The notes beneath the pieces are model-generated. The model was not told where the DNA came from and made no database searches. It was given only the letters and a program-made list of their open reading frames with translations. The position numbers and the translations under genes were made by a program. From assembly GCF_000006765.1 (NCBI RefSeq), contig NC_002516.2: a stretch of 64,000 nucleotides of DNA; one strand, written 5' to 3'. This document shows, in pieces, positions 10,234 through 46,814 of the stretch. Source of the DNA: Pseudomonas aeruginosa PAO1. GTDB lineage: Bacteria; Pseudomonadota; Gammaproteobacteria; Pseudomonadales; Pseudomonadaceae. Position 1 is the first letter of the stretch, and every line of letters starts with the position of its first letter.

Positions 10234-10267
10234 CCATGCCCCCGGCGGCGTTCCGCCGGGGGCATGG
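10234..10267 (-). terminator. Probable intrinsic terminator of opgGH
   Basis: Perfect 15-bp stem CCATGCCCCCGGCGG/CCGCCGGGGGCATGG right after the opgH stop, followed on the minus strand by TCTGTTTCTT. Confidence 0.7.
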
Positions 10268-10269
10268 GA

Positions 10270-16287: not shown

Positions 16288-16468
16288 GATGCGCTCCCGA
16301 GGCGATGTGTTCGGCCCCCGGCGCAAACGTCGACAGCGGGGCCCGTCCTTTGCTCTGCCGCGCATGATACTTCGGCGCCGGGAAAAAAACCGAGCGGCTT
16401 TCATGTCCGCCCCGGTAGACGGAAAACCATCAATCCAAGCAACGGCGCCTGGCGCCGGGAGAACGAGC

Positions 16469-21482: not shown

Positions 21483-22360
21483 TGACCCGGCTTCCAGTCG
21501 GGTCGAGCTGCGTCGTAGCCCTGGACGGGGTGGGGTGGCAAGGGGTTATATTTTACCAAATTGGGAAAACGAAGATCGGGGTCGGCATCAATTTGCAGAT
21601 AGAGGGAGTAGTAGAATTTCTCAAGCTTTTCATCCGGCGTATACCACATTGCACTTGAAGGAGGCGTCCTCTTTCCGAAGACGCGCGAGAGAAAAAAGGC
21701 TGCACTCCTGCCGCCTTGAGAGACGGAGACTTGATAGTAGCTAAGTGCCTTTGGATAATTATTTTCAACCAACTCATAGTAGCTTCCAAGCTCATAGCTC
21801 GCCGGAGCATAACCTTGACTGGAAGCACAACTGGCATACGCCAGCCCCAATTCCTTTTCCTTGGCCACATAAATATAGAGTTTACCCAACTCGGTCAGTG
21901 CTGGCGGGTTCCCCAAACTAGCGGCTTTATCCAAGAAGGTCAGACCATCGGTAGCAGGGTTCTTAACACCGGCACGATTACCAATCATTGCCCCCATATC
22001 ATAGAACCCCTGAGGCACATCCAGATCTATCATCTTTTGATAGAGATCCAATGCCTTCTGCGGATCTTTTTCTACTCCTCCGGGCCACCCTGTACGATAA
22101 AGATTCGCCAAATTATGCATGGCCTTCCAATGACCGCGCTCCACTGCCTTGCTGTAAATCTCGACGATACGGCCCCAGGGCCGCAGAGTATCGGGCTTGG
22201 CCAAGGCTGCTGCTTCGCGGTACCAAGCATCGGCTTGCGGATCCAACGGCGGCAGATGGTCTTTTTCATTAGCGCAGACAAATGGTTTGCTGTTGGCCAT
22301 CACGGGGACGCCTGCAAGACAGAGCACGGCCCAAAGTCCAATAGCCATCAGCCGCATCAC
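21479..22360 (-). CDS. tli5b: T6SS phospholipase immunity protein (middle copy)
   Basis: 293 aa; same architecture; 4-bp overlaps with both neighbours. Confidence 0.9.
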   Translation of the reverse strand: MMRLMAIGLWAVLCLAGVPVMANSKPFVCANEKDHLPPLDPQADAWYREAAALAKPDTLRPWGRIVEIYSKAVERGHWKAMHNLANLYRTGWPGGVEKDPQKALDLYQKMIDLDVPQGFYDMGAMIGNRAGVKNPATDGLTFLDKAASLGNPPALTELGKLYIYVAKEKELGLAYASCASSQGYAPASYELGSYYELVENNYPKALSYYQVSVSQGGRSAAFFLSRVFGKRTPPSSAMWYTPDEKLEKFYYSLYLQIDADPDLRFPNLVKYNPLPPHPVQGYDAARPDWKPGQ

Positions 22361-23238
22361 TGCCCCGGTTTCCAGTCGGGCCGATCTGCGTCGTAGCCCT
22401 GGGTCGGGTGAGGAGGCAGAGGATGGTCCTTTATCAAGTTGGGAAAACGCAAATCAGGATCAGCGGCAAGTTGATCGTAAATACCATCATATAGTTTGTG
22501 CAGCTTCTCATCGGGGGCGTACCACATTCTGTCAACATCGGGACTAGTCTTATCAAAAACTCCGGACATGAAGAAGGCAGCATCATCATTTCCTTGGCTT
22601 GCAGCAAGAAGGTAATAGCCTGCCGCCTTTGGGTAGTTATGTGCCACCAAACGATAGTACATCGCCAACTCGTAATTGGCAGGAGCATAGCCCTGGCCTG
22701 CAGCACAGTTCGTATATTTCAGCCCCAACTCATCCTGACCAGCAACATATATATATAGCCTTCCTAACTCAGTTAATGCTGGTGGATTACCCAAGCTTGC
22801 AGCCTTATCGAGAAAGGTAAGTCCATCAGTCGCAGGATTCTTGACGCCAGCACGATTTCCGATCATTGCCGCCATATCGTAGAAACCTTGAGGAACCTTC
22901 AAATCGATCATCTTCTGGTAGAGATCTAGAGCTTTCTGAGTATCCTTCTCCACACCGCCTGGCCAACCGGTACGATAGAGGCTCGCCAAGTTATGCATAG
23001 CCTTCCAGTGACCACGCTCAACTGCCTTACTGTATAGATCGACGATACGATCCCAGGGACGCAGGGTATCGGGCTTGGCGAGAGCTACTGCCTCCCGATA
23101 CCATGCATCAGCCTGAGGATCTAGAGATGGCAAGTGGTCTTTTTCGTTAACGCATATAAAAGGTCGTAGTTCAGCCGCCATGACAGGATTTCCCGACAAC
23201 AAAAAAATCAAGAGAAAAAAACATAATGGACGCATCAT
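22357..23238 (-). CDS. tli5b: T6SS phospholipase immunity protein (effector-proximal copy)
   Basis: 293 aa; ATG abuts the pldB stop (TGAATG). Confidence 0.9.
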   Translation of the reverse strand: MMRPLCFFLLIFLLSGNPVMAAELRPFICVNEKDHLPSLDPQADAWYREAVALAKPDTLRPWDRIVDLYSKAVERGHWKAMHNLASLYRTGWPGGVEKDTQKALDLYQKMIDLKVPQGFYDMAAMIGNRAGVKNPATDGLTFLDKAASLGNPPALTELGRLYIYVAGQDELGLKYTNCAAGQGYAPANYELAMYYRLVAHNYPKAAGYYLLAASQGNDDAAFFMSGVFDKTSPDVDRMWYAPDEKLHKLYDGIYDQLAADPDLRFPNLIKDHPLPPHPTQGYDADRPDWKPGQ

Positions 23239-28115: not shown

Positions 28116-28916
28116 TCAGGCGTAGCGCTCGCGACCCCAGGCGAGGAGGCTTTCCAGCAGTTCGCGGATGACTGCGCGGGTCGCTTCGGCGAGGTCCGCG
28201 CGGTAAGCGAACGGGGCCTGCTCGTCCATGTAGGTGCACTGCGCCAGCTCCAGCTGGACGGCATGGACGTGCTGCTCCGGCTGGCCGTAGTGGCGGGTGA
28301 TGTGGCCGCCCTTGAAGCGCCCGTTGAGCACATGGCTGTAGCCTTCGGCGGCAGCGCAGACCGCCTCCAGGCGGGCCGCCAGCGCTGGATCGCAACTGGC
28401 GCCGGCGTTGGTGCCGAGATTGAAGTCGGGCAGTCGGCCGTCGAACAGGTGCGGCACGTGGGAACGGATCGAGTGGGCGTCCCAGAGCAGCGCGTAGCCG
28501 AACTCGGCCTTCAGCCGCGCCAGTTCCTCGGCGATGGTCCGGTGGTAGGGCGTCCACACTTCGGCCAGGTAGCGCATGCGTTCCTCGGCGGACGGCGCCA
28601 TGCCTTCGCGGTAGAGCGGCCGGCCGTCGAACAGGGTGTCCGGATACAGGCCGGTAGTGGCGGTGCTGTACAGCGGCTTGTCGTCGGAAGGGCGGTTGAG
28701 ATCGACCACATAGCGCGAATAGTGGGCAGCCAGGGTGCTGGCGCCCAGTTCCTCGGCGAAATCGTAGAGCCGGGGAATGTGCCAGTCGGTATCGGTCAGC
28801 GCCCGCGCCTCCTCCACCAGGCCGGCGTCCACCGCCGGGGTCAGGCGCGTGCCGGGGTGCGGCATGCTGATCAGTAGCGGCACGCGGCCGCGCTTGAAAC
28901 TCAGGACTTCATCCAC
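28116..28916 (-). CDS. hutG: N-formylglutamate amidohydrolase
   Basis: GTG start 28916 (266 aa); [38 protein letters not shown]. Confidence 0.92.
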
Positions 28917-30117
28917 GGTATACCTCCTCGGCGTGGCGAATGACGCGTTTCGGCAGATCGCCTCCCAGCCAGTAGGCCAGCTCCGCCGGACGCTCGATGT
29001 CCCAGGCGACGAAGTCGGCCAGCTTGCCGACCTCCAGGCTGCCGTGGCTGGCTTCCAGCCCCAGCGCCCGGGCGGCGTGCAGGGTGACACCGGCCAGCGT
29101 CTCCTCCGGGGTCAGGCGGAACAGGGTACAGGCCATGTTCAGCATCAGGCGCAACGACAGCGCCGGCGAGGTGCCGGGATTGAGATCGCTGGCAATGGCC
29201 ATGGCCACGCCGTGCCGGCGCAGGGCATCGATCGGCGGCAGCTGGGTCTCGCGCAACAGGTAGAAGGCGCCCGGCAGCAGCACCGCGACGGTGCCCGCCT
29301 CGCCCATGGCGCGGGCGTCGTCCTCGGTCATGTACTCCAGGTGGTCGGCCGACAAAGCCCGGTAGCGCGCCGCCAGGCTGGAACCGTGCAGCGAGGATAG
29401 CTGCTCGGCGTGCAGCTTCACCGGCAGGCCCAGCTCGCGGGCGGCGATGAATACCCGCTCGACCTGCGCCGGGGAAAACGCCAGGTGCTCGCAGAAGGCG
29501 TCCACCGCGTCCACCAGTCCCTCCCCGGCCAGCGCGGGGAGCATCGTCGAGCAGATATGCTCGATGTAGTCGTCGGCGCGCCCGGCGTATTCCGGCGGTA
29601 GCGCATGGGCAGCCAGGCAGGTGCTGCGCACGGTCGCCGGCAGGCGTTCGCCGAGGCGGCGGATGACCCGCAGCATCTTGCGTTCGCTGGCCAGGTCGAG
29701 GCCGTAGCCGGACTTGATCTCCAGCGCCGTCACGCCGTCGCGCAGCAAGGGCTCCAGGCGCTTGCGCGCGCTGGCCAGCAATTCTTCCTCGCTGGCCTCG
29801 CGGGTGGCGCGTACGGTGCTGGCGATACCGCCGCCGGCGGCGGCGATCTCGGCGTAGCTGACGCCCTCCAGGCGCTGCTCGAATTCGCCGCTGCGGTTGC
29901 CGCCGAACACCGCGTGGGTGTGGCAGTCGATCAACCCCGGGGTCAGCCAGGCGCCACCGAGGTCGATGCGTTCGGCGTAGTCGCCGGGCGGCAGTTCGGC
30001 GCGCGGGCCGATCCAGTGGATCAGCGGACCGTCGGTGACCAGGGCGGCGTCCTCGACGATCGAGTACTTGCCGCCCTTGAGGGTGGCGGCATGGCAATGC
30101 TGCCAGAGTCGTTTCAT
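28909..30117 (-). CDS. hutI: Imidazolonepropionase
   Basis: 402 aa; [41 protein letters not shown]. Confidence 0.95.
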
Positions 30118-31646
30118 TGCAGGTCTCCTATGCTCGCGGCCAGCCGGGCGAGACTCTTCCGCTCGCCGAGGATGGCCGCCGCGCTGGCGATGTCGGGAGC
30201 CAGCCAGCGGTCGGTGTCGTACGCGGGCACGCGCTCGCGCAGGATGCCCCAGGCCGCCGCGGTGCCCTGGCCGAAGCGTTGCGGGGCGAGGAATTCAAAG
30301 GCCTGGGCGGCCAGCAGGTACTCGATGGCGAGGATCCGCCGGAGGTTCTCCAGGGCCCTACCAAGCTTGAGCGCGGCACTGGTGCCGAGGCTCAGGTGGT
30401 CCTCCTGGAGCGCCGAGGTGACGAAGTTGTCGACCACCGCCGGCTGCGCCAGCTGGCGGTTCTCGCCGGCCAGGGAGGCGGCGACGTACTGGGTGATCAT
30501 CATCCCCGAGTTGACTCCCGGCTTGCCCACCAGGAACGCCGGCAGGCCGCTGACCAGCGGGTTGACCAGGCGATCCAGGCGCCGCTCGGCGACCCCGCCC
30601 AGCTCGGCCACGGCGATCGCCAGCAGGTCGGCGGCCATCGCCACCGATTCGCCGTGGGGATTGGCCTGGGATACCACCCGGTAGGCTTCCGGCGTACCCA
30701 GCAGCAGCGGGTTGTCGGTGGCCGAGTTGAGTTCGGTCTCTATCTGCCGCGCCGCGTGGGCCAACTGGTCACGGCAGGCGCCATGGATCTGCGGTATCGA
30801 GCGGATGCTCAGGGCATCCTGGGTGCGGATGCCGCGGGCGTTCTCCAGTACCTGGCTGCCAGCCAGCAAGGCTCGCAGATTGGCGGCGACCCGCTGCATC
30901 CCGGGATGCGGCTTGAGCGCAACGATCTCGGCGTCGAACGCCGCCAGTTGGCCGCGCAGGGCCTCGAAGCTCATCGCCCCGATCACGTCGGCCCACTGCG
31001 CCAGGCGCTGCGCGTCGTCCAGGGCCAGGCAGGCGAGGCCGGTCATGCACGGCGTGCCGTTGACCAGGCAGAGCCCGTCCTTGGCTCCCAGGCGCACCGT
31101 CGCCAGGCCTTCCGCCGCCAACGCGGCGGCGGCCGGCACGACGCTGCCGCGGTAGCTGACCTCGCCGATGCCGAGCAGGGCGATGCCGACGTGCGCCATG
31201 TGGGTCAGGTAGCCCACCGAGCCCTGGGCCGGCACCTGCGGGGTAATGCCGTGGTTGAGCAGCGCCAGCAGCCCTTCCACCAGCGAACGGTCGAGCCCGG
31301 ACTTGCCCTGGCTGTAGTTGGCGACGGCGGCACAGATGATCGCCCGGGTCTGTTCGTCGCGCAGCGGCTCGCCGACCCCGCAGGCATGGCTGAGCAAGGT
31401 GTTGCGCGACAGCTCGGCGAGCTGCTCGCCTTCCAGCAGGACGTCGCACAGCGCGCCGAGGCCGGTACTGATGCCGTAGGCACGCTCGCCGTTGGCGACG
31501 ATACGGCAGACGATGGCGCGGGCATTGTCGATCCGTGCCCAGGCCGCCGCCGACAGTTCCAGGCGCGCACCGTGCCGGGCCACCGCGACCAGTTCCTGCC
31601 AACGCAGCGGACCGTCGCCGAACACGACGCTCGGTAGGTCGCTCAT
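30114..31646 (-). CDS. Histidine ammonia-lyase paralog lacking the MIO-forming Ala-Ser-Gly
   Basis: 510 aa; HAL-fold motifs ([32 protein letters not shown]) but GSVGYLTH where HutH has [11 protein letters not shown]. Confidence 0.9.
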
Positions 31647-32473
31647 AGGTTCGCCACCCGCCGCTGGACGAAGCGGTCGACGTAGTCGTCGGCCGGCTGG
31701 TGGAGGATTTCCCGTGGTGTGCCGACCTGGATCAGCTGGCCGTCCTTGAGGATCGCGATGCGGTTGCCGATGCGTACCGCCTCGTCGAGGTCGTGGGTGA
31801 TGAAGACGATGGTCTTGTGCAAGGTTTTCTGCAGTTCCAGCAACTGGTCCTGCATGTCCGCGCGGATCAACGGGTCGAGGGCGCTGAAGGCCTCGTCCAT
31901 GAGGATGATCTCAGTGTCGGCGGCCAGCGCGCGGGCCAGGCCGACACGCTGGCGCATGCCGCCGGAAAGCTGGTGCGGATAGGACTTCTCGTAGCCCTTC
32001 AGGCCCACCGTGGCGATCCAGTGCAGGGCCCGCTCGTGGCACTGCGCCCGGCTTTCGCCGCGAACCTTCAGGCCGTAGGCGACATTGTCGAGCACGCTCT
32101 TGTGCGGCAGCAGGCCGAAACTCTGGAACACCATGCTGATCTTGCGCCGACGGAATTGCCGGAGGGCTTCCATGTCGTAGCGCAGGATGTCCTCGCCATC
32201 CACCAGGATCTCGCCGCTGGTGGGGTCGATCAGGCGGTTGAAATGGCGCACCAGGGTCGACTTGCCGGAACCCGACAGGCCCATGATCACGAAGATCTCG
32301 CCAGCGCCGATGGACAGCGACAGGTCGTTGACGCCGACCACGCAGCCGGTCTGCGCCAGCACTTCGCCCTTGCTGCGTCCCTGGCGGATCAGCGCCAGCG
32401 CGGCATCGGCGCGCGGGCCGAAGATCTTGAACACGTTCTTCACTTCGATCTTGTTCATCTGCGCACCGCTCAT
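31643..32473 (-). CDS. Betaine/proline (ProV-like) ABC transporter ATP-binding protein
   Basis: Start [12 protein letters not shown] (32473), 276 aa; [29 protein letters not shown]. Confidence 0.92.
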
Positions 32474-33321
32474 TTGCTCGTCTCGTGCCGGGAACGGCCA
32501 TAGGCCTGGGTGATGCGGTCGATCACCACCGCGAGGATGACGATCGCCAGGCCGGCTTCCAGGCCCTTGCCCACGTTCAGCGTCTGGATGCCCACCAGTA
32601 CGTCTTCGCCGAGGCCGCGGGCGCCGATCATCGAAGCGATCACCACCATCGACAGGGCCATCATGGTGGTCTGGTTGATCCCCGCCATGATGCTCGGCAG
32701 GGCCAGCGGCAACTGCACGCCGAACAGCTGCTGCCAGCGGTTGGCGCCGAAGGCGTTGACCGCCTCCATCACCTCGCTGTCGACCTGGCGGATGCCCAGG
32801 TCGGTGAGGCGGATCAGCGGCGGCGCGGCATAGATCACGGTGGCGAAGATCGCCGGCACCTTGCCCAGGCCGAACAACATCAGCACCGGGATCAGGTACA
32901 CGAAGCTGGGCATGGTCTGCATGATGTCCAGCAGTGGCATCAGCACCGCGCGCAGGCGGTTGCTGCGCGCGGCGAGGATGCCCAGGGGGATGCCGATCAG
33001 CACCGAGATGAAGGTCGCCACCAGCATCAGCGCGAGGGTCTGCATCAGCTTGTCCCAGAGGCCGACGGCGCCGACCAGGAACAGCAGGCCGGTGATCACC
33101 AGGGTCGGCAGCAGGCGCCGGGTGGCGTGCCAGGCGATCGCCGCGACGATCGCCAGCAATAGCCACCAGGGCGTGGCGCGGAGCAGCCCTTCGAGGTTGA
33201 CGATGGCCCACAGCAGGGTGTCGGAGATCTTGCGGAACAGGTCGCCGTAGTTGGTCACCAGGGCGTCGACCCAAGCGTTGACCCAGTTGGCGATGGAAAA
33301 TGTCAGGCGTTCGGGAAACAT
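32470..33321 (-). CDS. Betaine/proline (ProW-like) ABC transporter permease
   Basis: 283 aa; [41 protein letters not shown]. Confidence 0.93.
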
Positions 33322-33345
33322 GGTCTGCTCTCGTCGGTCGTGGGT

Positions 33346-34314
33346 TCAGAGTGCCGCTTCGATCTTCTTCGCCGCGTCCTCGTCGACCCAGGCGTGCCAG
33401 ACCTCGGGGTGCTCCTTGAGGAACTCGCGCGCCAGGCGCGCCGCATCGATCCGGTCCTTGGCCATCCGCGCCAGGTCGCTGTTCAGCAGCTCCGCCGGCA
33501 GGTTGACCTTCTCCAGCACCGCCACCAGCTCCGGCGCCTGGTCGTGGAAGGTCCGCGACAGGCCGACCTGGATCCTGATGCGCTTGTCGACGCCGGGCCT
33601 TTCCTCCAGGCGCACCAGGCCGGCGCGGCCCATCAGCGGCGTCGGCGACCAGTAGTAGAACAGGATAGGCTCGCCGCGCCGATAGCTCGACAGCACCGCC
33701 GCGTCCAGTGCCGGGCCGGTGCCCGGACGGAAATTGGTGAACGTCTCCTCCAGGCCGTAGCTTTTCAGCATCTCGCTGTTCTCCAGCTCGCAGGTCCAGC
33801 CGGCCGGGCAATTGTAGAAGCGCCCCTTGCCCGGTTCTTCCGGGTCGCGGAAGACCTCGGCGTACTGCGCCAGGTCGGCGATAGAGCGCAGCTTCGGCGC
33901 CTTCGCCTCGAGCTTGCGCTGCGGGTCGCCCTCGATCACGTAGCGCGGCACGTACCAGCCCTCCACCGCGCCGACGATGGGTTCGCCGACGCCGACCACC
34001 TTGCCGGCGGCGGCGGCCTTGTTCCAGGCGTCGCTGCGGCCGATCCACTCCTCGGCGAAGACCTGGATGTCATTGGTGCTCAGCGCCTGCTCCATGGTGA
34101 TCGAGTTGCCCGGCAGGCTGTCGGTGGTACAGCCGTAGCCCTTGGCCAGGACGAACTGCATCAGTTCGGTGAGCAGCGTCCCGCTCTCCCAGTTCAGCCC
34201 GGCGAACTTCACCGCCTTGCCGGACTCGCACCAACCTTCCGCCTGGGCGCCCGCCGCGGCGGCGAGCAGGCCGAGGGCACAGAGAACACTCAACATCGAC
34301 TTCTTGTATCGCAT
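33346..34314 (-). CDS. Betaine-type (ProX/HisX-like) ABC substrate-binding protein
   Basis: Start MRYKKS (34314) with signal peptide; [31 protein letters not shown]. Confidence 0.9.
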
Positions 34315-34431
34315 GGTTCGACGCTCCAGATGCACGATTGGGAAAGGCAGTTGGAAAACCTGCGGGCCGCGCCCGGGGGAACGGCCTCGATCATTGTTAT
34401 TGGCCGGCGGCTCAGGCCGCCGTCGGTTCCG

Positions 34432-35835
34432 TCACAGCCCTCCCTGGGCCTGAAGCACGCCATGCGCGGCATCGCCCTTCGGCCTGACCCAGCGCCGGTA
34501 GGCGATCACCAGCAAGGCGATCCAGATAGCCCCGACCCACAGGGCCGGGCGGGTGTCCGGGAAATAGCCGAGCACCACGAAGATGAACAGCATGAAGACG
34601 ATCGCCGCCGCCGGCGCGAATGGCCACAGCGGCACCGGGAACTTCAGCGCGGCGACCTGGCGCGGCCCCATGCGCCGGCGCATGCCGACCTGGGCCAGGA
34701 GGATCATCAGCCAGACCCACACGGTGGCGAAGGTGGCGATGGAAGCGATCAACAGGAATACGCTCTGCGGGATCAGGTAGTTCAGCGCCACGCCGAGCAG
34801 CAGGGCCACCGCCATCAGCAGCACGGTCATCCACGGCACGCCGTGCCGCGACACCCGCGAGAAGCCGACCGGCGCCTGGCCCTGGCGGGCCATGCCGTAG
34901 AGCATGCGACCGGCGCCGAAGATGTCGCTGTTGATCGCCGAAATCGCCGCGGTGATCACCACGACATTGAGGATCGCCGCGGCCGACTCGATCCCCAGGC
35001 CGTCGAAGATCTGCACGAAGGGACTGCCGTTGCTGCCGATCTGCTGCCAGGGGAAGATCGCCATCAGCACGAACAGGGTCAGCACGTAGAACAGCAGGAT
35101 GCGCAGCGGCACCGCATTGATCGCCCGCGGGATCACCCGCTGCGGGTCCTGCGCCTCGCCGGCGGTGATGCCGATGATCTCGATGCCGCCGAAGGCGAAT
35201 ACCACCACCGACAGCGAGGCGACCAGCCCGGCCCAGCCGTTGGGCAGGAAGCCGCCGTGCTGCCACAGGTTGTGCACGCCGGTGGCGGACGTCGCCGCGC
35301 CGCCCAGGCTGAAGCCGAAGAACATGATGCCGAGCCCGGCGAGGATCATCGCGACGATGGCGCCGACCTTGACCAGCGACAGCCAGAACTCCAGCTCGCC
35401 GAAGACCTTGACATGACAGAGGTTCAGCCCGCCGATGAACAGCACGATGGACAGTACCCAGATCCAGCGCGGCACGTCGGGAAACCAGAACCCCATGTAG
35501 ATGCCGAACGCGGTGACATCGGCGAGGCAGACGATGATCATCTCGAAAGCGTAGGTCCAGCCGGTGACGAACCCGGCCAGGGGGCCGAGATAGCTGCTGG
35601 CGTAATGGCCGAACGAGCCGGACACCGGCTCGTGCACTGCCATCTCGCCGAGCGCGCGCATCACCATGTACACCGCCGCACCGGCGACCAGGTAGGCCAG
35701 CAGCACCGCCGGCCCGGCCATCTGGATGGCCGATGCGGAACCGTAGAACAGGCCGGTGCCGATCGCCGACCCCAGTGCCATGAAACGAATATGACGGGCG
35801 TTCAGTCCGCGCCGAAGCCCCGTGTCGTGCGTCAT
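34432..35835 (-). CDS. hutT: APC-family histidine permease
   Basis: Start MTHDTG (35835), 467 aa; [31 protein letters not shown]; inside the hut operon. Confidence 0.85.
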
Positions 35836-35897: not shown

Positions 35898-37427
35898 TCA
35901 AAGACTCGGCAACAGCCGGGCCGGCAGCAGCGCGTTCAGGCAACCGCTGGCGAGCAACTGGCTGGCGGCCTCGATATCAGGGGCGAAGAAGCGATCCTCC
36001 TGGTAGTACGGCACCTTGTCGCGCAGCAGGCGGCGAGCCTGCTCCAGCTTCGGCGAACTCTTCAGGCCCTCGCGGAAGTCCAGGCCCTGGCAGGCGCCCA
36101 GCCACTCCACGGCGAGAATCCCGCGGACGTTCTCGGCCATCGCCCAGAGCCGTTTGCCGGCGTTCGGCGCCATCGACACATGGTCTTCCTGGTTGGCCGA
36201 GGTCGGCAGGCTGTCGACGCTGGCCGGATGGGCCAGGGCCTTGTTGTCGCTGGCCAGCGCGGCGGCGGTGACCTGGGCGATCATGAAGCCGGAGTTGACC
36301 CCGCCGTTGGCCACCAGGAACGGCGGCAACTGCGACATGTGCATGTCCATCATCAGCGAGATGCGCCGTTCCGACAGCGAACCGATCTCGGCCAACGCCA
36401 GGGCCAGGTTGTCGGCGGCCATCGCCACCGGTTCGGCGTGGAAGTTGCCGCCGGAGATCACGTCGCCCTCGGCGGCGAATACCAGCGGGTTGTCGGACAC
36501 CGCGTTGGCTTCGATCTCCAGCACCTCGGCGGCCTGGCGCATCTGGGTCAGGCAGGCGCCCATCACCTGCGGCTGGCAACGCAGCGAATAGGGGTCCTGG
36601 ACCTTGTCGCACTTCTCATGGGAGCGCGCCACCTCGCTGCTGGCGGTGAGCAGGTCGCGATAGGCCGCGGCCACGTCGATCTGCCCGCGCTGGCCGCGCG
36701 CGGCATGGATGCGCGCATCGAACGGCGCCCGCGAACCGAGCATGGCCTCGACGCTGAGCCCGCCGCAGACGGTGGCGGCGGCGAACAGGTCCTCGGCCTC
36801 GAACAACCCGCGCAGCGCGTAGGCGGTGGACACCTGGGTGCCATTGAGCAGGGCCAGGCCTTCCTTCGCCGCCAGGGTCAGCGGCTCCAGCCCGGCCACC
36901 GCCAGCGCTTCGGCGGCCGGCAGCCACTCACCGCGATGGCGCGCCCGGCTTTCGCCGATCAGCACCAGCGACATGTGCGCCAGCGGCGCCAGGTCGCCGG
37001 ACGCACCCACCGAGCCTTTCAGCGGGATGTGCGGATAGACCTCGGCGTTGATCAGCGCGATCAGCGCGTCGATCACCTTGCGGCGGATGCCGGAGAACCC
37101 GCGCGCCAGGCTGTTCACCTTGAGCAGCATGACCAGCCGCACCATGGCGTCGTCCAGCGCCTCGCCGACGCCGGCGGCATGGGACAGGACGATGGAACGC
37201 TGGAGCTTCTCCAGGTCTGCCGGGGAAATCCGCGTCGAGGCCAGCAGGCCGAAGCCGGTGTTGATGCCGTAGGCGGTGCGGCCCTCGGCGATGATGTTCT
37301 CGACACAGGCGACGCTGGCGGCGATCGGCGCGTCGGCGCTGGGATCCAGGCTCAGGCGCACGGGGGCCAGGTAGGCTTGGCGCAGGTCGGCCAGGGTCAA
37401 CTGGCCGGGTTTCAGATGCAGGCTCAT
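35898..37427 (-). CDS. hutH: Histidine ammonia-lyase
   Basis: 509 aa; intact [14 protein letters not shown] (ASG codons 36996-37004), [20 protein letters not shown]. Confidence 0.96.
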
Positions 37428-37523: not shown

Positions 37524-38966
37524 TCAGGCCCCGTGCGCGGGATGTTCGAAGGCGCCGGGATCGGCCGGCAGGATCATTCGCGCCGGGGCCTGGCGCGTGG
37601 CCTTGCGCCGCGCCACCAGGTAGTAGAGGACCGCCGGCACCAGCAAGCCGATGATCCAGGAGATATCCACGCCGCCGAGGTGCTCGACCATCGGTCCGGT
37701 GTACAGCGTGGTCGCCAGGAACGGCATCTGCACCAGCACGCCGAGGGTATAGACGGCGATTCCCGGCAGGTTCCAGCGACCGTAGCGGCCGTCGGGGTCG
37801 GCCAGCGCGGGCACGTCATAGCGCTCGCGGGTGATGAAGTAGTAGTCGACCAGGTTCACCGCGCTCCACGGGGTGAAGAAGGTCAGCAGGAACAGGATGA
37901 AGGACTTGAACGCAGCGAGGAACGAGTGCTGGCCGAGCAGCGCGATGAGCGTCGAGGCGCCGACGATCGCGAGGACGAAGAACAGGCGTTGCACGCGGGT
38001 GATCTCCAGTTGGCCGCGTACGCTGCTGATGATGGTCGCGATGCACATGAAGCTGCCGTAGGAGTTCAGCGTGGAAATGGTCACCTTGCCGAAGGCGATG
38101 CTGAAGTAGAGCAGCGCGGCGACGGTCCCGCTGCTGCCCAGGCCGACGATGTAGGCCACCTCGCGGCCGGCGAACTGGCCGTTGGCCAGGGCTGCGGAGA
38201 ACACCCCGAGGACCATCGAGGCCTGGGCGCCGAGCACCGAGCCGAGGCCGACGGCGAGGAAGGTCTTCCACGACGAGGTGGACGCCGGCAGGTAGCGTGA
38301 ATAGTCGGCCACGTAGGGGCCGAAGGCGATCTGCCAGGACGCCGCCAGCGACACCGCGAGGAGGAACGAGGCCCAGCTGAAATGGCGGATGGCGAGCAGG
38401 TCGCCGATGTCGCTGAGCAGCATCAGGCGGCTGAACAGGTAGGCGAAGGCGATGATGCCGAGGACGCTGGCGATCCGCCCGATGATGTGGATGACGCGAT
38501 AGCCGAGCACCGTCACCAGGACGATGAAGGCGGCGAAGATGAAGATTCCGGCGCTGTCGCTGAGCCCGGTGAGCTGGCCGATGGCCTGGCCGGAAAGCAC
38601 CGTGCCGGTGGCGGTGAAGCCCAGGTACATCAGGCACACCAGTGCGATCGGGATGCAGGCGCCGTAGACGCCGAACTGCACCCGGCTGGAAATCATCTGC
38701 GGCAGCCCCAGGCGCGGCCCCTGCGCGGCGTGCAGGGCCATCACCGCGCCGCCGAGGAGCTGGCCGAGGAGCAGGCCGACCAGCGACCAGAACACGTCGC
38801 CGCCGAGGACCACGGCGAGGGCGCCGGTGACGATGGCGGTGATCTGCAGGTTGGCCCCCAGCCAGAGGGTGAACTGGCTGTAGAGGCGGCCGTGGCGCTC
38901 GTTCGCCGGGATGTAGTCGATCGAGCGCCGTTCGATCAGTGGCTTGCTGTCGCTGCCCTGGGTCAT
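37524..38966 (-). CDS. NCS1 (purine-cytosine permease) family transporter, probable urocanate permease
   Basis: Start MTQGSDSK (38966), 480 aa; GLPQMISSRVQFG, PYVADYSRYLP; between hutU and hutH. Substrate is inferred from context. Confidence 0.8.
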   Translation of the reverse strand: MTQGSDSKPLIERRSIDYIPANERHGRLYSQFTLWLGANLQITAIVTGALAVVLGGDVFWSLVGLLLGQLLGGAVMALHAAQGPRLGLPQMISSRVQFGVYGACIPIALVCLMYLGFTATGTVLSGQAIGQLTGLSDSAGIFIFAAFIVLVTVLGYRVIHIIGRIASVLGIIAFAYLFSRLMLLSDIGDLLAIRHFSWASFLLAVSLAASWQIAFGPYVADYSRYLPASTSSWKTFLAVGLGSVLGAQASMVLGVFSAALANGQFAGREVAYIVGLGSSGTVAALLYFSIAFGKVTISTLNSYGSFMCIATIISSVRGQLEITRVQRLFFVLAIVGASTLIALLGQHSFLAAFKSFILFLLTFFTPWSAVNLVDYYFITRERYDVPALADPDGRYGRWNLPGIAVYTLGVLVQMPFLATTLYTGPMVEHLGGVDISWIIGLLVPAVLYYLVARRKATRQAPARMILPADPGAFEHPAHGA

Positions 38967-39073
38967 GCTGCTGTACTCCGCTGCGGCTCGCGCGCCGCCA
39001 TTCTTGTTGTGGCCTGGTCGGGACAGTGGGCGGCCGCCCCCACGCCCCGCCGGCGTGGAGGCGGTTTTCGAGG

Positions 39074-40753
39074 TCAGCGCTGGGCGGTGATCATCGGCAG
39101 GTTCAGGCCCTGCTCCTTCGCGCAATCGATGGCGACCTGGTAGCCGGCGTCGGCGTGCCGCATCACCCCGGTCCCCGGGTCGTTGGTCAGTACGCGGGCG
39201 ATGCGTTCGGCGGCCTCGTCGCTACCGTCGCAGACGATCACCATCCCGGAGTGCTGGGAGAAGCCCATGCCTACGCCGCCGCCGTGGTGCAGCGAGACCC
39301 AGGTGGCGCCGCTGGCGGTATTCAGCAGGGCATTCAGCAGCGGCCAGTCGGACACCGCGTCGGAGCCGTCCTGCATGGCCTCGGTCTCGCGGTTGGGGCT
39401 GGCCACCGAGCCGGAGTCGAGGTGGTCGCGGCCGATGACGATCGGCGCGGACAGCTCGCCCGTGCGCACCATCTCGTTGAAGGCCAGGCCGAGCTTGGCG
39501 CGCAGCCCCAGGCCAACCCAGCAGATGCGCGCCGGCAGGCCCTGGAAGCTGATGCGCTCGCGGGCCATGTCCAGCCAACGGTGCAGGTGGGCATCGTCGG
39601 GGATCAGTTGCTTGACCTTGGCGTCGGTCTTGTAGATGTCCTGCGGGTCGCCCGACAGCGCGGCCCAGCGGAACGGACCGATGCCGCGACAGAACAGCGG
39701 GCGGATGTAGGCCGGGACGAAGCCGGGGAAATCGAAGGCATTGGCCACCCCCTCTTCCTTGGCCATCTGGCGGATGTTGTTGCCATAGTCGAAGGTCGGC
39801 ACGCCCTGCTGCTGGAACGCCAGCATGGCCCGCACGTGTACCGCCATGGACTGCTTGGCGGCCTTGACCACGGCGGCCGGGTCGGTCTGCGCGCGGTCGC
39901 GGTACTCTTCCCAGCTCCAGCCGGCCGGCAGGTAGCCGTTGAGTGGATCGTGGGCGCTGGTCTGGTCGGTGACCATGTCCGGGCGTACGCCGCGGCGAAC
40001 CAGTTCCGGAAGGATCTCGGCGGCATTGCCCAGCAGGGCGATGGAGATGGCCTTGCCTTCGGCGGTGTAGCGCTGGATCCGCGCCAGGGCGTCGTCCAGG
40101 TCCTTGGCCTGCTCGTCGACGTAGCGACTGCGCAGGCGGAAGTCGATGCGGCTCTGCTGGCACTCGATGTTCAGCGAACAGGCGCCGGCCAGGGTCGCCG
40201 CCAGCGGCTGGGCGCCGCCCATGCCGCCAAGGCCGGCGGTAAGCACCCAGCGGCCCTTGAGATTGCCGTCGTAATGCTGGCGGCCAGCCTCGACGAAGGT
40301 TTCGTAGGTGCCCTGGACGATGCCCTGGCTGCCGATGTAGATCCACGAACCGGCGGTCATCTGGCCGTACATCGCCAGGCCCTTGGCGTCCAGTTCGTTG
40401 AAGTGTTCCCAGGTCGCCCAGTGCGGCACCAGGTTGGAGTTGGCGATCAGCACCCGCGGCGCGTTGGCGTGGGTCTTGAACACGCCGACCGGCTTGCCGG
40501 ACTGTACCAGCAGGGTCTCGTCGTCGTTCAGTTGCTTGAGGGTCTCGACGATCCTGTCGTAGCACTCCCAGTTGCGCGCGGCACGGCCGATGCCGCCGTA
40601 AACCACCAGTTCCCTGGGGTTCTCCGCGACCTCCGGGTCGAGGTTGTTCATCAGCATGCGCAGCGGCGCTTCGGTCAGCCAGCTCTTGGCGGTCAGCGTA
40701 GTGCCGCGCGGGGCGCGGATTTCAATATCGCGGAATTTGCTCGGGGTGGTCAC
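39074..40753 (-). CDS. hutU: Urocanate hydratase
   Basis: GTG start 40753 (559 aa); [54 protein letters not shown]. Confidence 0.96.
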
Positions 40754-42848: not shown

Positions 42849-43871
42849 TTACTTCAGGGAGGTATCGAGGCGCGCGGCGACTTCGGCCGGCACCCAGTGG
42901 CTCCAGATTTCGCGATGCTGGCGAAGAAACTGCGCACGCACCTCGCCGACCTCGCGATGATTCTGCGCCATGTCGGCGAGCAGCTCGTTGAACAGCGGCA
43001 AGGGGATCTCGACCTTGCGGAACAGCTCGACCAACGCCGGCGCCTTGTCATGGAAATCGCGGGAAACGCCAACGGTGATCTTCGCCGGCAACGAGCGGGA
43101 ACCGATGGGGTCGGGGTTCTTCGGATCGGACAGGGTGGCCCAGGCCTTCTCGCTGAACGGCGGCTCTTCCAGTTGCACCAGCTTGAAACGGCCCATCAAC
43201 GGAGTCGGCGACCAATAGTAGAAAAGCACCGGCTCGCCGCGCCGGAAGGCCGCACTGATCGCCGCATCCAGCGCCGGGCCGGTGCCGGTGCGGAAGTTCG
43301 TGTAGCTGTCCTGCAACCTGTAGGCCTTGAGCTTCTGGCTGTTGACGATCTCGCAGGTCCAGCCGGTCGGGCAGTTGTAGAAACGCCCCTTGGCGGGCTC
43401 CTCGGGATCGCGGAATAGCGCCTTGTAGCGCGGCAGGTCGGCGACCGACCTCAACTCCGGCGCCTTCGCCTCGATGCCTCGTTGCGGGTCGCCCTTGACC
43501 AGGTACTCCGGCACCCACCAGCCCTCGGTGGCGCCCTTCACCGTCTCGCCGACGGAGAACACCTCGCCCGCCTCCTCCGCCGCGCGCCACACCGGGCTAC
43601 GCCCGGCCCATTGCTCCCCGGTGACCTGGATATCGTTCTGGCGCAGGGCGTTTTCCATGGTCACGGTATTGCCCGGCAGCGCGTCGGTCTCGCAGCCGTA
43701 GCCTTTTTCCAGTACGTAGCGCAACAGGTCGGTGGTGAACATGCCGCTTTCCCAGTTCAGCCCGGCGAACACCACTTTGCCCGGGTACGGGCATTCCGCC
43801 GCGACGGCGGTCTGGCTGGCGAGGCTGGCGCCCAGGGCGAGGACGGCGAGGATCTGGCGAAGCGGGGGCAT
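42849..43871 (-). CDS. Orphan betaine-type ABC substrate-binding protein (paralog of 33346-34314)
   Basis: Start MPPLRQIL (43871; alternative 43901); signal peptide; [24 protein letters not shown] shared with the paralog. Confidence 0.88.
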   Translation of the reverse strand: MPPLRQILAVLALGASLASQTAVAAECPYPGKVVFAGLNWESGMFTTDLLRYVLEKGYGCETDALPGNTVTMENALRQNDIQVTGEQWAGRSPVWRAAEEAGEVFSVGETVKGATEGWWVPEYLVKGDPQRGIEAKAPELRSVADLPRYKALFRDPEEPAKGRFYNCPTGWTCEIVNSQKLKAYRLQDSYTNFRTGTGPALDAAISAAFRRGEPVLFYYWSPTPLMGRFKLVQLEEPPFSEKAWATLSDPKNPDPIGSRSLPAKITVGVSRDFHDKAPALVELFRKVEIPLPLFNELLADMAQNHREVGEVRAQFLRQHREIWSHWVPAEVAARLDTSLK

Positions 43872-43960
43872 GCGGGTCTCCCGGTTGGAGTCGGACGGCA
43901 TGCGGAACTATATAGGCATTAAAAATATTGGATTAATAACGTTTGATTCTTTGGATAGAC

Positions 43961-44012: not shown

Positions 44013-44603
44013 TCACAGCGAATCGAGTTCCACCGCACAGACCCACGCCGGCTCGTGGGCCGTCAGGCGCCAATGCTGCAAGCCCTGCAGCCCCTCGGCG
44101 CACAGGCAGTCGTGGGCAGCCAGTTGCCCGCGAGGTTGCCCTTGCAAGGAAATCGCTACCCCGTCCTGCTGGGCGAACAGCAGCAGCGTGCTCGCCGTGC
44201 CGTGCCAGTCCAGCTCGCCCTCGACCCGCAGCCATTGCAGGCGCGCGCGATGGCGCCGGGGCGCATAGATCAGGTTGAAGTCGCGGATAGCTCCATCGAG
44301 CAGGGTGCAGTGCACCTCGCTGTCGCCGGAAAAGGCGAAGGCCTGCCGGGCGCGTAGCGGCGCGGATTCCGCGCCATCCACCCGCAGGCGCATGCCGCCG
44401 CCCTCCAGCACGCTGATGATCCGCTGGTAACCGGCGAAGCCGGAGAAGCCGCCGGACTCGCCGACATCGGCGATCGACAGGCGCCAGCCGAAGCCGTCCA
44501 GGCCGTCGCCGCCGTCGCGGGCGATCTCCTCGGTGGAGCCGGCGCCGTTCTTCCACGGCATTCTCGGGTAGTCGACGGCACGCAGGATGCGGAGTTCGCT
44601 CAT
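44013..44603 (-). CDS. hutD: HutD-family protein
   Basis: Start MSELRILRA (44603) overlapping the hutC stop; MPWKNGAGSTEEI, WRLSIADV, FSGFAGYQR, DFNLI. Confidence 0.92.
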   Translation of the reverse strand: MSELRILRAVDYPRMPWKNGAGSTEEIARDGGDGLDGFGWRLSIADVGESGGFSGFAGYQRIISVLEGGGMRLRVDGAESAPLRARQAFAFSGDSEVHCTLLDGAIRDFNLIYAPRRHRARLQWLRVEGELDWHGTASTLLLFAQQDGVAISLQGQPRGQLAAHDCLCAEGLQGLQHWRLTAHEPAWVCAVELDSL

Positions 44604-45352
44604 GAGCTGAAACGTCCTTCCAGACGGTGGCGGGAACCCGGGTGCAGCAGCCGCGCGGCGGTCACCGCGACACGCCCGGACCATGTGCGGCGGCGGATCA
44701 GCAGGCACGGCTCGCCGCGTTCGATCTGCAACAGCTTGCACTCGGCCGGCTCGGCGAGGATCGCCTCGACCACATGCTCGCCCTCGGTGAGCGGCGCCAC
44801 CTGGGTCAGGTAGGCATAGGGCGTTTGCCGGGTGAAATCCTGCTTGAGGTAGTCCGGCGCCACCGCGGCGTTCACGTAGCGGTCCTCGATCTGCACCGGG
44901 ATATCGTTCTCGTAGTGCACGATCAGCGAGTGGAACACCCGCTGGCCTTCGCGCACATCCAGTGCCAGGGCGCGCTCGGGGCCGGCGACCTCCTCGCCGA
45001 GGGTGATCACCTGGCAACGATGGCGATGCCCGCGGGCCGCGATCTCGTCGGCGATGTTGTGCACCTCGAACAGCGCCGACTGGCCCTTGGGCTCGGCGAC
45101 GAAGGTTCCTACCCCCTGCATGCGCACCAGCAGGCCGTCGCTGGTCAGTTCGCGCAGGGCGCGATTGATGGTCATGCGACTGAAGCCGAGCTGGCTGACC
45201 AGTTCGCTCTCGGACGGCACCCGGTGGTGCGGCGGCCAGGCGCCCGACTGGATCTGGCTGACGATCATCTGCTTGACCCGCGCGTAGAGCGGCGCCGGTA
45301 CCTCGCCGAGTTGCGAGGCCAGCGGGGAACGATCGGAGGAAGAGGACGTCAC
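44600..45352 (-). CDS. hutC: Histidine utilisation repressor (GntR/UTRA)
   Basis: 250 aa; PSESEL, SRMTINRAL, QGVGTFV, EHVVEA, RRTWS. Confidence 0.95.
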   Translation of the reverse strand: MTSSSSDRSPLASQLGEVPAPLYARVKQMIVSQIQSGAWPPHHRVPSESELVSQLGFSRMTINRALRELTSDGLLVRMQGVGTFVAEPKGQSALFEVHNIADEIAARGHRHRCQVITLGEEVAGPERALALDVREGQRVFHSLIVHYENDIPVQIEDRYVNAAVAPDYLKQDFTRQTPYAYLTQVAPLTEGEHVVEAILAEPAECKLLQIERGEPCLLIRRRTWSGRVAVTAARLLHPGSRHRLEGRFSS

Positions 45353-45408: not shown

Positions 45409-45430
45409 TGTATATGTATATACAAATAAA
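45409..45430. promoter_or_regulatory. HutC operator between divergent hutC and hutF
   Basis: TGTATATGTA-TA-TACAAATAAA with perfect TGTATATACA core (45415-45424), similar to the hutU operator. Confidence 0.75.
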
Positions 45431-45452
45431 ACAGACTGCGTGTGAGCTGATT

Positions 45453-46814
45453 ATGTCCGCAATTTTCGCTGAACGTGCGTTGCTGCCGGAAGGCTGGGCG
45501 CGAAATGTCCGTTTCGAGATTTCCGCGGACGGAGTCCTCGCCGAGATTCGTCCCGACGCCAACGCCGACGGCGCCGAACGCCTCGGCGGCGCCGTGCTGC
45601 CGGGGATGCCCAACCTCCATTCGCACGCGTTCCAGCGCGCCATGGCCGGGCTCGCCGAAGTCGCCGGCAATCCCAACGACAGTTTCTGGACCTGGCGCGA
45701 GCTGATGTACCGGATGGTCGCTCGACTGTCGCCGGAACAGATCGAGGTCATCGCCTGCCAGCTCTACATCGAGATGCTCAAGGCCGGCTACACCGCGGTG
45801 GCGGAATTCCACTACGTCCATCACGACCTCGACGGCCGCTCCTACGCCGACCCCGCCGAACTTTCCCTGCGCATCTCCCGCGCCGCCAGCGCCGCAGGTA
45901 TCGGCCTGACCCTGCTGCCCGTGCTTTACAGTCACGCAGGCTTCGGCGGCCAGCCGGCCAGCGAGGGCCAGCGGCGCTTCATCAATGGCAGCGAGGCCTA
46001 CCTGGAACTGCTCCAGCGCCTGCGCGCGCCGCTGGAGGCGGCAGGCCACTCCCTGGGCCTGTGCTTCCACTCCCTGCGCGCGGTGACTCCGCAGCAGATC
46101 GCCACGGTCCTCGCCGCCGGCCACGACGACCTGCCGGTCCACATCCATATCGCCGAACAGCAGAAGGAAGTCGACGACTGCCAGGCCTGGAGCGGACGCC
46201 GGCCGTTGCAATGGCTGTACGAGAACGTCGCGGTCGACCAGCGCTGGTGCCTGGTCCATGCGACCCACGCCGACCCCGCCGAGGTGGCGGCGATGGCGCG
46301 TAGCGGCGCGGTGGCCGGCCTGTGCCTGAGCACCGAGGCCAACCTCGGCGACGGCATCTTCCCGGCGACGGACTTCCTCGCCCAGGGCGGGCGCCTGGGC
46401 ATCGGCTCGGACAGCCACGTCTCGCTCAGCGTGGTCGAGGAACTCCGCTGGCTGGAATACGGCCAGCGCCTGCGTGACCGGAAACGCAACCGGCTGTACC
46501 GCGACGACCAGCCGATGATCGGCCGCACGCTCTACGACGCTGCTCTGGCTGGCGGCGCCCAGGCCCTTGGGCAGCCGATCGGTAGTCTCGCCGTGGGCCG
46601 TCGCGCCGACCTGCTGGTGCTCGACGGCAACGACCCCTACCTGGCCAGCGCCGAGGGCGACGCCCTGCTCAACCGCTGGCTGTTCGCCGGCGGCGACCGC
46701 CAGGTGCGCGACGTGATGGTGGCCGGCAGATGGGTGGTGCGCGACGGCCGGCATGCAGGGGAAGAACGCAGCGCACGGGCATTCGTCCAGGTGCTGGGGG
46801 AACTGCTCGACTGA
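45453..46814 (+). CDS. hutF: Formiminoglutamate deiminase
   Basis: Start MSAIFAE (45453), 453 aa; PNLHSHAFQR, EFHYVHH, HIHIAEQ, TEANLGDG, IGSDSH. Confidence 0.94.
   Translation: MSAIFAERALLPEGWARNVRFEISADGVLAEIRPDANADGAERLGGAVLPGMPNLHSHAFQRAMAGLAEVAGNPNDSFWTWRELMYRMVARLSPEQIEVIACQLYIEMLKAGYTAVAEFHYVHHDLDGRSYADPAELSLRISRAASAAGIGLTLLPVLYSHAGFGGQPASEGQRRFINGSEAYLELLQRLRAPLEAAGHSLGLCFHSLRAVTPQQIATVLAAGHDDLPVHIHIAEQQKEVDDCQAWSGRRPLQWLYENVAVDQRWCLVHATHADPAEVAAMARSGAVAGLCLSTEANLGDGIFPATDFLAQGGRLGIGSDSHVSLSVVEELRWLEYGQRLRDRKRNRLYRDDQPMIGRTLYDAALAGGAQALGQPIGSLAVGRRADLLVLDGNDPYLASAEGDALLNRWLFAGGDRQVRDVMVAGRWVVRDGRHAGEERSARAFVQVLGELLD

Follow-up and report, generated by a model that had tools for sequence, protein, structure and literature searches.

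A MIO-less histidine ammonia-lyase paralog and its betaine-type importer in the Pseudomonas aeruginosa hut locus: a candidate route for hercynine assimilation

The histidine utilization (hut) locus of Pseudomonas aeruginosa PAO1 raises the question of why a genome with a genuine histidine ammonia-lyase (HAL, the product of hutH) should keep in the same locus a second HAL-fold gene, one whose product lacks the residues that form the 4-methylideneimidazole-5-one (MIO) cofactor and which is coupled to an ATP-binding cassette (ABC) importer. We analyzed a stretch of 64,000 nucleotides from contig NC_002516.2 (hereafter, the window; GC content about 67%), which contains a hut locus of the P. aeruginosa type, and within it the span 30114-34314, which runs exactly from hutX to the second HAL-fold gene. 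These genes are already named: hutXWV and hutH1 correspond to PA5094-PA5096 and PA5093, respectively. Annotations everywhere call the lyase ‘histidine ammonia-lyase’ and the transporter ‘glycine betaine transporter’, and the pair has been noted as dispensable for growth on histidine. We propose, with a probability of about 0.55 judged from sequence and gene context, that the module would comprise a cytoplasmic hercynine trimethylammonia-lyase together with its own importer.

The second HAL-fold protein and its importer

The paralog (30114..31646, minus strand) is a full-length protein of 510 amino acids that matches PF00221 at 1.2e-163. The true HutH of the window (35898..37427, minus strand) scores 728 bits on the hutH equivalog model TIGR01225 and carries the MIO triad Ala142-Ser143-Gly144. 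In a pairwise alignment of the two proteins (41% identity), the Ala-Ser-Gly triad is missing from the paralog and the loop is three residues shorter than in HutH; the corresponding codons (31203..31223, minus strand) read GSVGYLT, with Tyr146 in place of Ala-Ser-Gly-Asp. The motifs QDPYSLR and SGGNFHAE of HutH are replaced by QDALSIR and SQANPHGE, and the paralog carries Leu in place of Tyr280 and Pro in place of Phe329 (P. putida numbering), both of which support MIO in HutH. It retains the Tyr loop YGISTG as well as the Ser-His motif, and Y57 (Tyr53 in HAL numbering), H87, Q276, R282, N312 and E415 are all present and invariant across the clade described below. The alignment thus bears out what the initial annotation had read from this gene, namely the absent triad and shortened loop, the changes of DPYSLR to DALSIR and of GGNFH to QANPH, and the preserved Tyr loop and imidazole-binding Ser-His pair. 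On TIGR01225 the paralog scores 531.9 bits, below the cutoff of 539.15. Judged by its triad, its supporting residues and its equivalog score, the paralog is not a MIO-dependent histidine ammonia-lyase.

An AlphaFold2 model of the paralog (predicted local distance difference test score of 90) matches P. putida HAL (1B8F) with a template-modeling (TM) score of 0.92 at 39% identity and Treponema denticola ergothionase (6S7J) with a TM score of 0.90 at 28% identity. Among the PDB matches, 6S7J ranked 13th to 16th, and HALs also came first when the protein P0232 was used as the query. The comparison with both enzymes, which the initial annotation had suggested, bears out the common fold; the paralog appears not to belong to the ergothionase lineage of T. 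denticola and Shewanella, given 28% identity compared with 39-41% to true HALs and membership in a separate, HutH-derived clade. Residues 385-390 of the paralog, around the site that residue spacing and not alignment predicts for T. denticola Lys384, read TQYVAA and include no Lys or Arg.

The loss of the cofactor residues is not accompanied by signs of decay. A genome scan with a seven-sequence alignment gave the best 80 loci, all of them from Pseudomonas; motifs were counted over 81 sequences, and the ratio of nonsynonymous to synonymous substitution rates (dN/dS) was calculated over 150 genome pairs. Internal stops were found in none of the 80 fetched orthologs. Relatives throughout Pseudomonas are 75-83% identical to the paralog, and the GSVGY-loop motif (including the GSVGYLT codons), QDALSxR, YGxxTG and LQEDH each occur in all 81 sequences, whereas the MIO triad occurs in none. 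The median dN/dS is 0.13 for the paralog compared with 0.074 for true hutH in the same genomes. The intact reading frames, the dN/dS value and the conserved motifs rule out a pseudogene, in agreement with the initial annotation, and the same observations dispose of chance or sequencing error. An artefact of one strain is excluded by the 919 member sequences in the 90%-identity cluster. Two single-member clusters that are 100% identical to the paralog (P0001, 785 aa; P0003, 726 aa) combine PF00005 (ABC ATPase) with PF00221; these appear to be read-through fusions of HutV with the lyase in individual assemblies, presumably resulting from the ATGA overlap between the two genes.

The importer genes hutX (33346..34314), hutW (32470..33321) and hutV (31643..32473) lie directly upstream on the same minus strand. 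A gap of 24 bp separates hutX from hutW, and 4-bp ATGA overlaps join hutW to hutV (32470-32473), hutV to the paralog (31643-31646), and the paralog to hutI (30114-30117), so that hutI and hutG are closely packed with hutX-hutW-hutV and the HAL paralog in a single unit. HutX (PA5096-like) is a periplasmic substrate-binding protein of the OpuAC fold (PF04069, 2.7e-60) and of the E. coli ProX subtype. In a HMMER alignment, each of the aromatic-box residues W65, W140 and W188 of E. coli ProX aligns with a Trp in HutX. The Trp-containing motifs EEW, GWTCE and FYYW are found in 74, 74 and 60 of 74 Pseudomonas orthologs, respectively, and also in the Sinorhizobium meliloti binding protein at the syntenic position, which is 51% identical to HutX. 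As read from the sequence, this aromatic box would be compatible with a quaternary ammonium ligand. The permease HutW best matches ChoW (TIGR03416, 298.9 bits) and ProW (NF008196, 263.7 bits), each below the equivalog cutoff. The ProV-type ATPase HutV scores 363.9 bits on TIGR01186, above the cutoff of 326.6, but over profile positions 2-232 of 363 only, being a short form without the C-terminal regulatory half. The profile searches bear out the ProX/ProW/ProV type of the importer that had been noted initially, and the coordinates bear out its 4-bp overlaps.

Phylogenetic distribution and gene context

Beyond Pseudomonas, we sampled the 150 best 50%-identity representatives out of 1.84 billion proteins, including 18 full-length ones without the MIO triad. 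In a maximum-likelihood tree, all 18 fall into one clade with no MIO-bearing member (Shimodaira-Hasegawa-like support of 0.864), which points to one ancient loss of MIO. The clade covers Proteobacteria, Firmicutes and Actinobacteria. Most of its representatives have the pattern GS[VL]GY-L, with a single Tyr in place of Ala-Ser-Gly-Asp, and the GSVGY-loop signature together with QDALSxR is the same in Pseudomonas and in Bacillales. All 18 representatives keep Tyr53 as the base, His83 and Glu414 as imidazole ligands, and Gln277, Arg283 and Asn313 as carboxylate ligands (P. putida HAL numbering). In contrast, Tyr280 is substituted in 16 of them (by Leu in 13) and Phe329 in 15 (by Pro, Ala or Cys), and Asn195 is changed to Ser in nine. 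Two preprints on Shewanella enzymes list the same retained residues for MIO-independent trimethylammonia-lyases (bioRxiv 10.1101/2025.08.13.670108; 10.64898/2026.04.22.720169). The combination of a retained base and ligands with lost MIO residues is thus the published trimethylammonia-lyase pattern, and it supports a trimethylammonia-lyase reading for the clade. As far as can be told from these sequences, the clade derives from HutH and lies outside the ergothionase lineage; when a named ergothionase was sought among the relatives of clade member P0122 and in the cluster names, none was so labeled.

Within the 80 Pseudomonas loci, the hutX-hutW-hutV-paralog block is essentially invariant, while true hutH and hutT shift around it. 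The commonest gene order (at least 18 loci) is hutU-NCS1(hutTu)-hutXWV-paralog-hutH-hutT-hutIG, which is the published order of P. fluorescens SBW25, where true hutH and hutT go by the names hutH2 and hutTh, and by this match identifies the paralog as SBW25 hutH1 and as PA5093. In the P. putida group, no hut gene occurs within 10 kb of the X-W-V-lyase genes, which have a LysR regulator of their own in divergent orientation. The four genes behave as a self-contained unit that travels together.

Relatives of the module were found in Rhizobiaceae, Burkholderia, Halomonas, Bacillales and Brevibacterium, with gene contexts taken from exact-protein look-ups and from a plasmid collection. Outside Pseudomonas, members of the clade are almost always coupled to an importer gene. 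In S. meliloti the order is hutC-hutF-hutX-hutW-hutV-lyase, with a ProU-type importer and a GSVGY lyase. A BCCT transporter gene lies immediately upstream of the lyase gene in Halomonas (with an 8-bp overlap), in Brevibacterium and in a Tissierellales bacterium, and a four-gene OpuC-type betaine ABC system occupies this position in Paenibacillus beijingensis and Brevibacillus marinus. The binding proteins of these OpuC-type systems match choline- and betaine-binding proteins as well as EgtUC structures at about 1e-48 or better, and HutX of the window gave no match to the EgtUC structures at E<0.01. The EgtU-type connection drawn by the initial annotation therefore holds for the Firmicute partners but does not extend to HutX itself, which is of the ProX subtype. 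In Cysteiniphilum the partner is an MFS transporter. Altogether, three of the five partner transporter families (ProU-type, OpuC-type and BCCT) are dedicated to quaternary ammonium compounds.

The genes downstream of the lyase are informative in Bacillales. In Paenibacillus, the lyase gene is followed directly by true hutU (994 bits, compared with 705-745 for thiourocanate hydratase models), hutI, an amidohydrolase gene and a hutF-like deiminase gene. The Brevibacillus lyase gene precedes two hutU-type genes (753 and 1011 bits), hutI, and a gene for a hutG-like formimidoylglutamase (207 bits, below the cutoff of 229). No histidase with an Ala-Ser-Gly triad was found within 10 kb of either lyase. 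The presence of true hutU and hutI after the lyase, together with the lack of such a histidase in this range, implies that the product of the Bacillales lyases should be urocanate. The two urocanase genes of B. marinus are located at 11542-13188 and 14893-16560 of locus L090, and the copy adjacent to the lyase is the one with the lower hutU score (753 versus 1011); it may represent a specialized variant.

Some members of the clade have other neighbors. The genes next to P0122, which is 51% identical to the paralog, are closest to S-methyl-thiourocanate hydratase, S-methyl-thiohydantoin desulfurase, ErtD and ErtE, all below the respective cutoffs. On this evidence, histidine betaines seem to be the common substrates of the clade, with ring substitution differing from member to member. 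In locus L083, a gene for an N-methyl-amino-acid-oxidase-like (MTOX/sarcosine-oxidase-like) FAD enzyme (5246-6568) comes after the MIO-less lyase, and in loci L086 and L087 the genes after the lyase encode a family III CoA-transferase, a 3-hydroxyacyl-CoA dehydrogenase and a creatinase-like M24 protein; these neighbors hint at other, different substrates in the clade. On the metagenomic contig L088, two divergent MIO-less HAL paralogs (10001-11533, GSVGYLQPGAH; 14069-15619, GSVGYLSPEAH) flank a sodium:solute symporter gene, in the vicinity of a sigma-54 activator, HutD and a urocanase-like gene.

A HutC site, an 18-bp palindrome, has been placed at -108 to -90 of ‘hutIG’ in the literature (PMC12772324). 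This palindrome, CGGCGGCCTGAGCCGCCG, has a single exact match in the window (34405..34422, minus strand), which is 91-108 bp upstream of the hutX ATG (PA5096) and not upstream of hutI. The transcript controlled by HutC therefore most likely begins at hutX and includes the paralog, and hutXWV-paralog-hutIG is probably an operon. A promoter and terminator scan of the region 27.9-41.2 kb gave no signal exceeding the shuffled expectation. The same publication labels PA5093 as ‘hutG’, yet PA5093 is the MIO-less HAL paralog. It also reports that deletion of PA5098 (true hutH) in PAO1 impairs growth on histidine although PA5093 is present (PMC12772324), which indicates that PA5093 supplies no histidase. 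Similarly, hutH1 is stated to be unnecessary for growing on histidine in the published genetics of SBW25.

Proposed function and competing explanations

Urocanate is the inducer of HutC, and hercynine (N-alpha-trimethylhistidine, or histidine betaine) is both a precursor and an oxidation product of ergothioneine, made by fungi, actinomycetes and cyanobacteria. From the loss of the MIO residues, the coupling to importers that are mostly of betaine families, the Bacillales operons and the chemistry, we infer that the enzyme would convert an imported N-alpha-trimethyl histidine derivative to urocanate. In the proposed mechanism, the four genes hutX-hutW-hutV-paralog would act as a module to ‘import and convert’, giving the histidine utilization pathway a side entrance. 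HutXWV, with its aromatic-box binding protein, would take up hercynine, and the MIO-less enzyme would hold the imidazole and the carboxylate as histidase does. Tyr57 would then abstract the beta-proton, and trimethylamine would be expelled; the MIO electrophile would be unneeded because trimethylamine is a good leaving group. The product, trans-urocanate, would be consumed by HutU, HutI, HutF and HutG, which are encoded around the module. Urocanate made from hercynine would also relieve HutC repression, so that hercynine alone would induce the operon. The Shewanella preprints explain the loss of MIO in the same way, trimethylamine leaving far more readily than ammonia (bioRxiv 10.1101/2025.08.13.670108; 10.64898/2026.04.22.720169).

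The initial annotation had proposed import and lysis of an N-alpha-methylated histidine in general, leading to urocanate or thiourocanate. The residue pattern, the relatives with betaine importers and the hutU and hutI genes after the lyase in Bacillales speak for the core of this proposal, but its partly methylated substrates and its ergothioneine branch fare worse. Partly methylated histidines are unlikely substrates by analogy, because a trimethylammonium group is reported to be a strict requirement of the characterized MIO-less lyases. For the window enzyme, we favor hercynine over ergothioneine because HutU of the window is a true urocanase, no thiourocanate enzymes are encoded, and there is no Lys near the predicted Lys384 position. 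Thiourocanate hydratase, thiohydantoin desulfurase, hydantoinase, ErtD and ErtE were all sought in the window and none was found, the pathway genes present being only true hutU, hutI, hutG and hutF. According to the Shewanella preprints, Lys384 of T. denticola ergothionase, located 28 residues before the imidazole-binding Glu, binds the thiolate and is replaced by Asn or Gln in lyases of sulfur-free betaines.

Several observations weigh against a hercynine lyase with its own importer. The function characterized for HutXWV is histidine uptake: the SBW25 literature names it a histidine transporter, and the S. meliloti system is reportedly a high-affinity histidine transporter that also accepts proline betaine and proline. 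A literature search returned no ligand data for PA5096. The partner of the lyase is a HisJ/LAO-type ABC system, a type associated with basic amino acids, in Rhizobium etli, Burkholderia pyrrocinia and Erwinia, and HisJ-type importers occur in one third of the sampled lineages. The association with betaine importers expected by the initial annotation is thus real for the ProU, OpuC and BCCT partners without being universal. In addition, the substrate of the lyase would be assigned from gene context for the clade as a whole, the clade is just 28% identical to the one solved ergothionase (6S7J), the Mg2+-dependent and periplasmic Shewanella enzyme is a loose analogue, and no genes for trimethylamine handling are evident adjoining the module.

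These points lend some weight to an explanation in which HutXWV is one more high-affinity histidine importer and the paralog a non-catalytic accessory protein, such as a binder of histidine or urocanate, a regulator or a transport chaperone. Reviews of SBW25 describe HutXWV as a histidine transporter and the S. meliloti system is said to be one too, the module is placed inside a histidine operon controlled by HutC, and the Rhizobium, Burkholderia and Erwinia relatives lie behind HisJ/LAO-type importers. Yet simple binding would give no reason for the catalytic Tyr53 loop and all six substrate ligands to be invariant in different phyla when only the MIO-related residues have drifted; the repeated coupling to BCCT and OpuC systems would be left unexplained, as would the operons in which the MIO-less protein is the sole HAL-type gene product before hutU and hutI. 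We consider this explanation unlikely. Much the same applies to a trimethylammonia-lyase acting not on hercynine but on a ring-substituted derivative (ergothioneine, S-methyl-ergothioneine or ergothioneine sulfonate), which we rate as slightly more improbable. Ergothionases are the classical MIO-less relatives of HAL, and P0122 lies beside genes resembling those for S-methyl-thiourocanate hydratase, S-methyl-thiohydantoin desulfurase, ErtD and ErtE. The L083 neighbors, however, are all below the equivalog cutoffs, the window has neither a thiourocanate hydratase nor a desulfurase, its sole urocanase reaches 1035 bits on the hutU model but about 700 on those of the thio-variants, and the region around the predicted thiolate-binding position, located by residue spacing and not by alignment, is free of Lys and Arg.

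A different imported histidine derivative, for example N-alpha-mono- or dimethylhistidine, a histidine-type opine, or a betaine methylated at N-pi or N-tau, would agree with the heterogeneity of the partner importers, which include HisJ/LAO/opine-type and MFS systems, with the MTOX/sarcosine-oxidase-like gene after the lyase in L083, and with the S. oneidensis enzyme SO_3299, an example of how a MIO-less lyase can be tuned to ring-methylated betaines. It is decidedly unlikely in view of the strict trimethylammonium requirement reported for the characterized enzymes, the poor leaving-group quality of secondary and tertiary amines without MIO, and the predominance of quaternary-amine families among the partner transporters (three of five). 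That the paralog is a weak or conditional MIO-free histidine ammonia-lyase serving as a back-up histidase is hardly credible. Its universal annotation as histidine ammonia-lyase and a score of 549 bits on a HAL subfamily model would suit such a role; against it, the MIO triad, Tyr280 and Phe329 are all gone, the hutH equivalog score is below the cutoff, and the genetics of both PAO1 (PA5098 deletion with PA5093 intact) and SBW25 (hutH1 dispensable on histidine) point the other way. We leave a slim chance that the true function is none of these.

If the hercynine reading is true, it would assign a role, about 20 years on, to a gene pair that is present in most Pseudomonas genomes and that has been noted as dispensable on histidine since the SBW25 hut genetics. 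Hercynine-lyase chemistry would then reach beyond the respiratory niche of Shewanella and take part in the mainstream assimilation of nitrogen and carbon in several phyla. In soil, the rhizosphere and infected tissue, it would represent both a sink for hercynine derived from ergothioneine and a microbial trimethylamine source not recognized before. For annotators, the replacement of GSxGASGDL by GSxGY-L, together with QDxLSxR, would serve as a signature separating the MIO-less enzymes from histidases. We see about even odds for the broader proposition that hutXWV-hutH1 (PA5096-PA5093) and its relatives constitute a widespread, previously unrecognized cytoplasmic route of hercynine assimilation in soil, plant-associated and opportunistic bacteria, releasing trimethylamine and passing urocanate into the Hut pathway; the GSVGY clade would then be a second, HutH-derived lineage of MIO-free trimethylammonia-lyases, whose members are tuned to particular histidine betaines in line with the partner importer.

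The surrounding locus and known systems

The minus-strand genes follow one another in the order hutU, NCS1 permease, true hutH, APC permease, hutX, hutW, hutV, the second HAL-fold gene, hutI and hutG. The urocanase gene hutU (39074..40750) scores 1035 bits on TIGR01228, compared with 692-715 bits for thiourocanate hydratase models. The NCS1-family permease (37524..38972; TIGR00800, 112 bits) is hutTu-like and syntenic in the Pseudomonas loci, a candidate urocanate permease, and the APC-family amino-acid permease HutT (34432..35835) is a histidine permease candidate, with a ProY-like score below the cutoff (NF007876, 679.6 bits). Downstream of the paralog are genes for the imidazolonepropionase HutI (28909..30117; TIGR01224, 488 bits), whose start overlaps the lyase stop, and the N-formylglutamate deformylase HutG (28116..28916, start approximate; TIGR02017, 407.8 bits). 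The repressor gene hutC (44600..45352, minus strand; TIGR02018, 320.9 bits) and the formimidoylglutamate deiminase gene hutF (45414..46814, plus strand; TIGR02022, 721.7 bits) complete the set.

A second HutX-type binding protein, 52% identical to HutX, is encoded between hutU and hutC (42849..43901, minus strand) without a permease or ATPase of its own. This orphan may share HutWV and so broaden or split the ligand range, for instance between histidine and betaine. Two further minus-strand genes next to it (41895-42833 and 41079-41876) encode a membrane protein of the fatty-acid-desaturase family and a binding protein of the phosphonate-bd type. Directly downstream of hutG lies a low-GC islet (21479-27845, minus strand; GC 0.55-0.58 compared with 0.67 in the flanks), which encodes a VgrG-type spike with Phage_GPD/Gp5 domains (25473-27845), a 745-aa protein with a phospholipase D motif (23239-25476) and two tandem 293-aa Sel1-repeat proteins (21479-23238). 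The islet looks like type VI secretion effector and immunity genes.

Among known systems, the nearest relative of the paralog is HutH itself (P. putida 1B8F and the window gene), with 39-41% identity, a TM score of 0.92, the same substrate-binding residues and a place in the same operon. The differences are the absent MIO triad, the absent Tyr280 and Phe329, a loop shorter by three residues, and the genetic inability of the paralog to substitute for HutH. The SBW25 HutXWV/hutH1 and S. meliloti hutXWV genes are orthologous and represent the same module, so that the functional reading is what is new here. A literature search whose coverage did not include the original SBW25 and S. meliloti papers returned no published function for the paralog and no functional study of the module. 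The importer shares with EgtUV the quaternary-amine ABC superfamily and a binding protein with an OpuAC domain, and the partners of the Firmicute lyases match EgtUC at 1e-48. HutX is nevertheless of the E. coli ProX subtype, and the binding protein, permease and ATPase are separate, unlike the fused permease and binding protein of EgtU.

Ergothionase (T. denticola 6S7J; Burkholderia sp. HME13 BAM63550) likewise belongs to the HAL family and eliminates trimethylamine independently of MIO, and 6S7J has a similar fold (TM score of 0.90). It differs in its low identity to the paralog (28%) and in Lys384, at whose predicted position, by spacing, the paralog has no Lys; the window also lacks the thiourocanate hydratase, desulfurase and hydantoinase steps. 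The only literature found to link histidine betaine with urocanate consists of the Shewanella preprints. Conversion of hercynine to urocanate and trimethylamine by Swoo_3913 of Shewanella woodyi was first reported in August 2025 and was termed a novel reaction there (bioRxiv 10.1101/2025.08.13.670108), and SO_3057 and SO_3299 are MIO-independent lyases of S. oneidensis (bioRxiv 10.64898/2026.04.22.720169). Like the paralog, these three enzymes have a HAL fold without Ala-Ser-Gly, and keep the catalytic Tyr, the Gln/Arg/Asn set and the His/Glu pair; they have a neutral residue in place of the Lys, as the paralog would at the position predicted by spacing. Swoo_3913 does by demonstration what is proposed for the paralog; it is Mg2+-dependent and 26% identical to P. 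putida HAL, and it is compared with the paralog here by its published description. The Shewanella enzymes are periplasmic, have a signal peptide and are coupled to flavocytochrome reductases for anaerobic respiration. In contrast, the paralog is a cytoplasmic protein with 41% identity to HutH; it is coupled to an importer and placed to feed the assimilatory Hut pathway. The module would thus carry out hercynine-lyase chemistry in a separate version, derived from HutH, cytoplasmic and assimilatory, and hard-wired to its importer.

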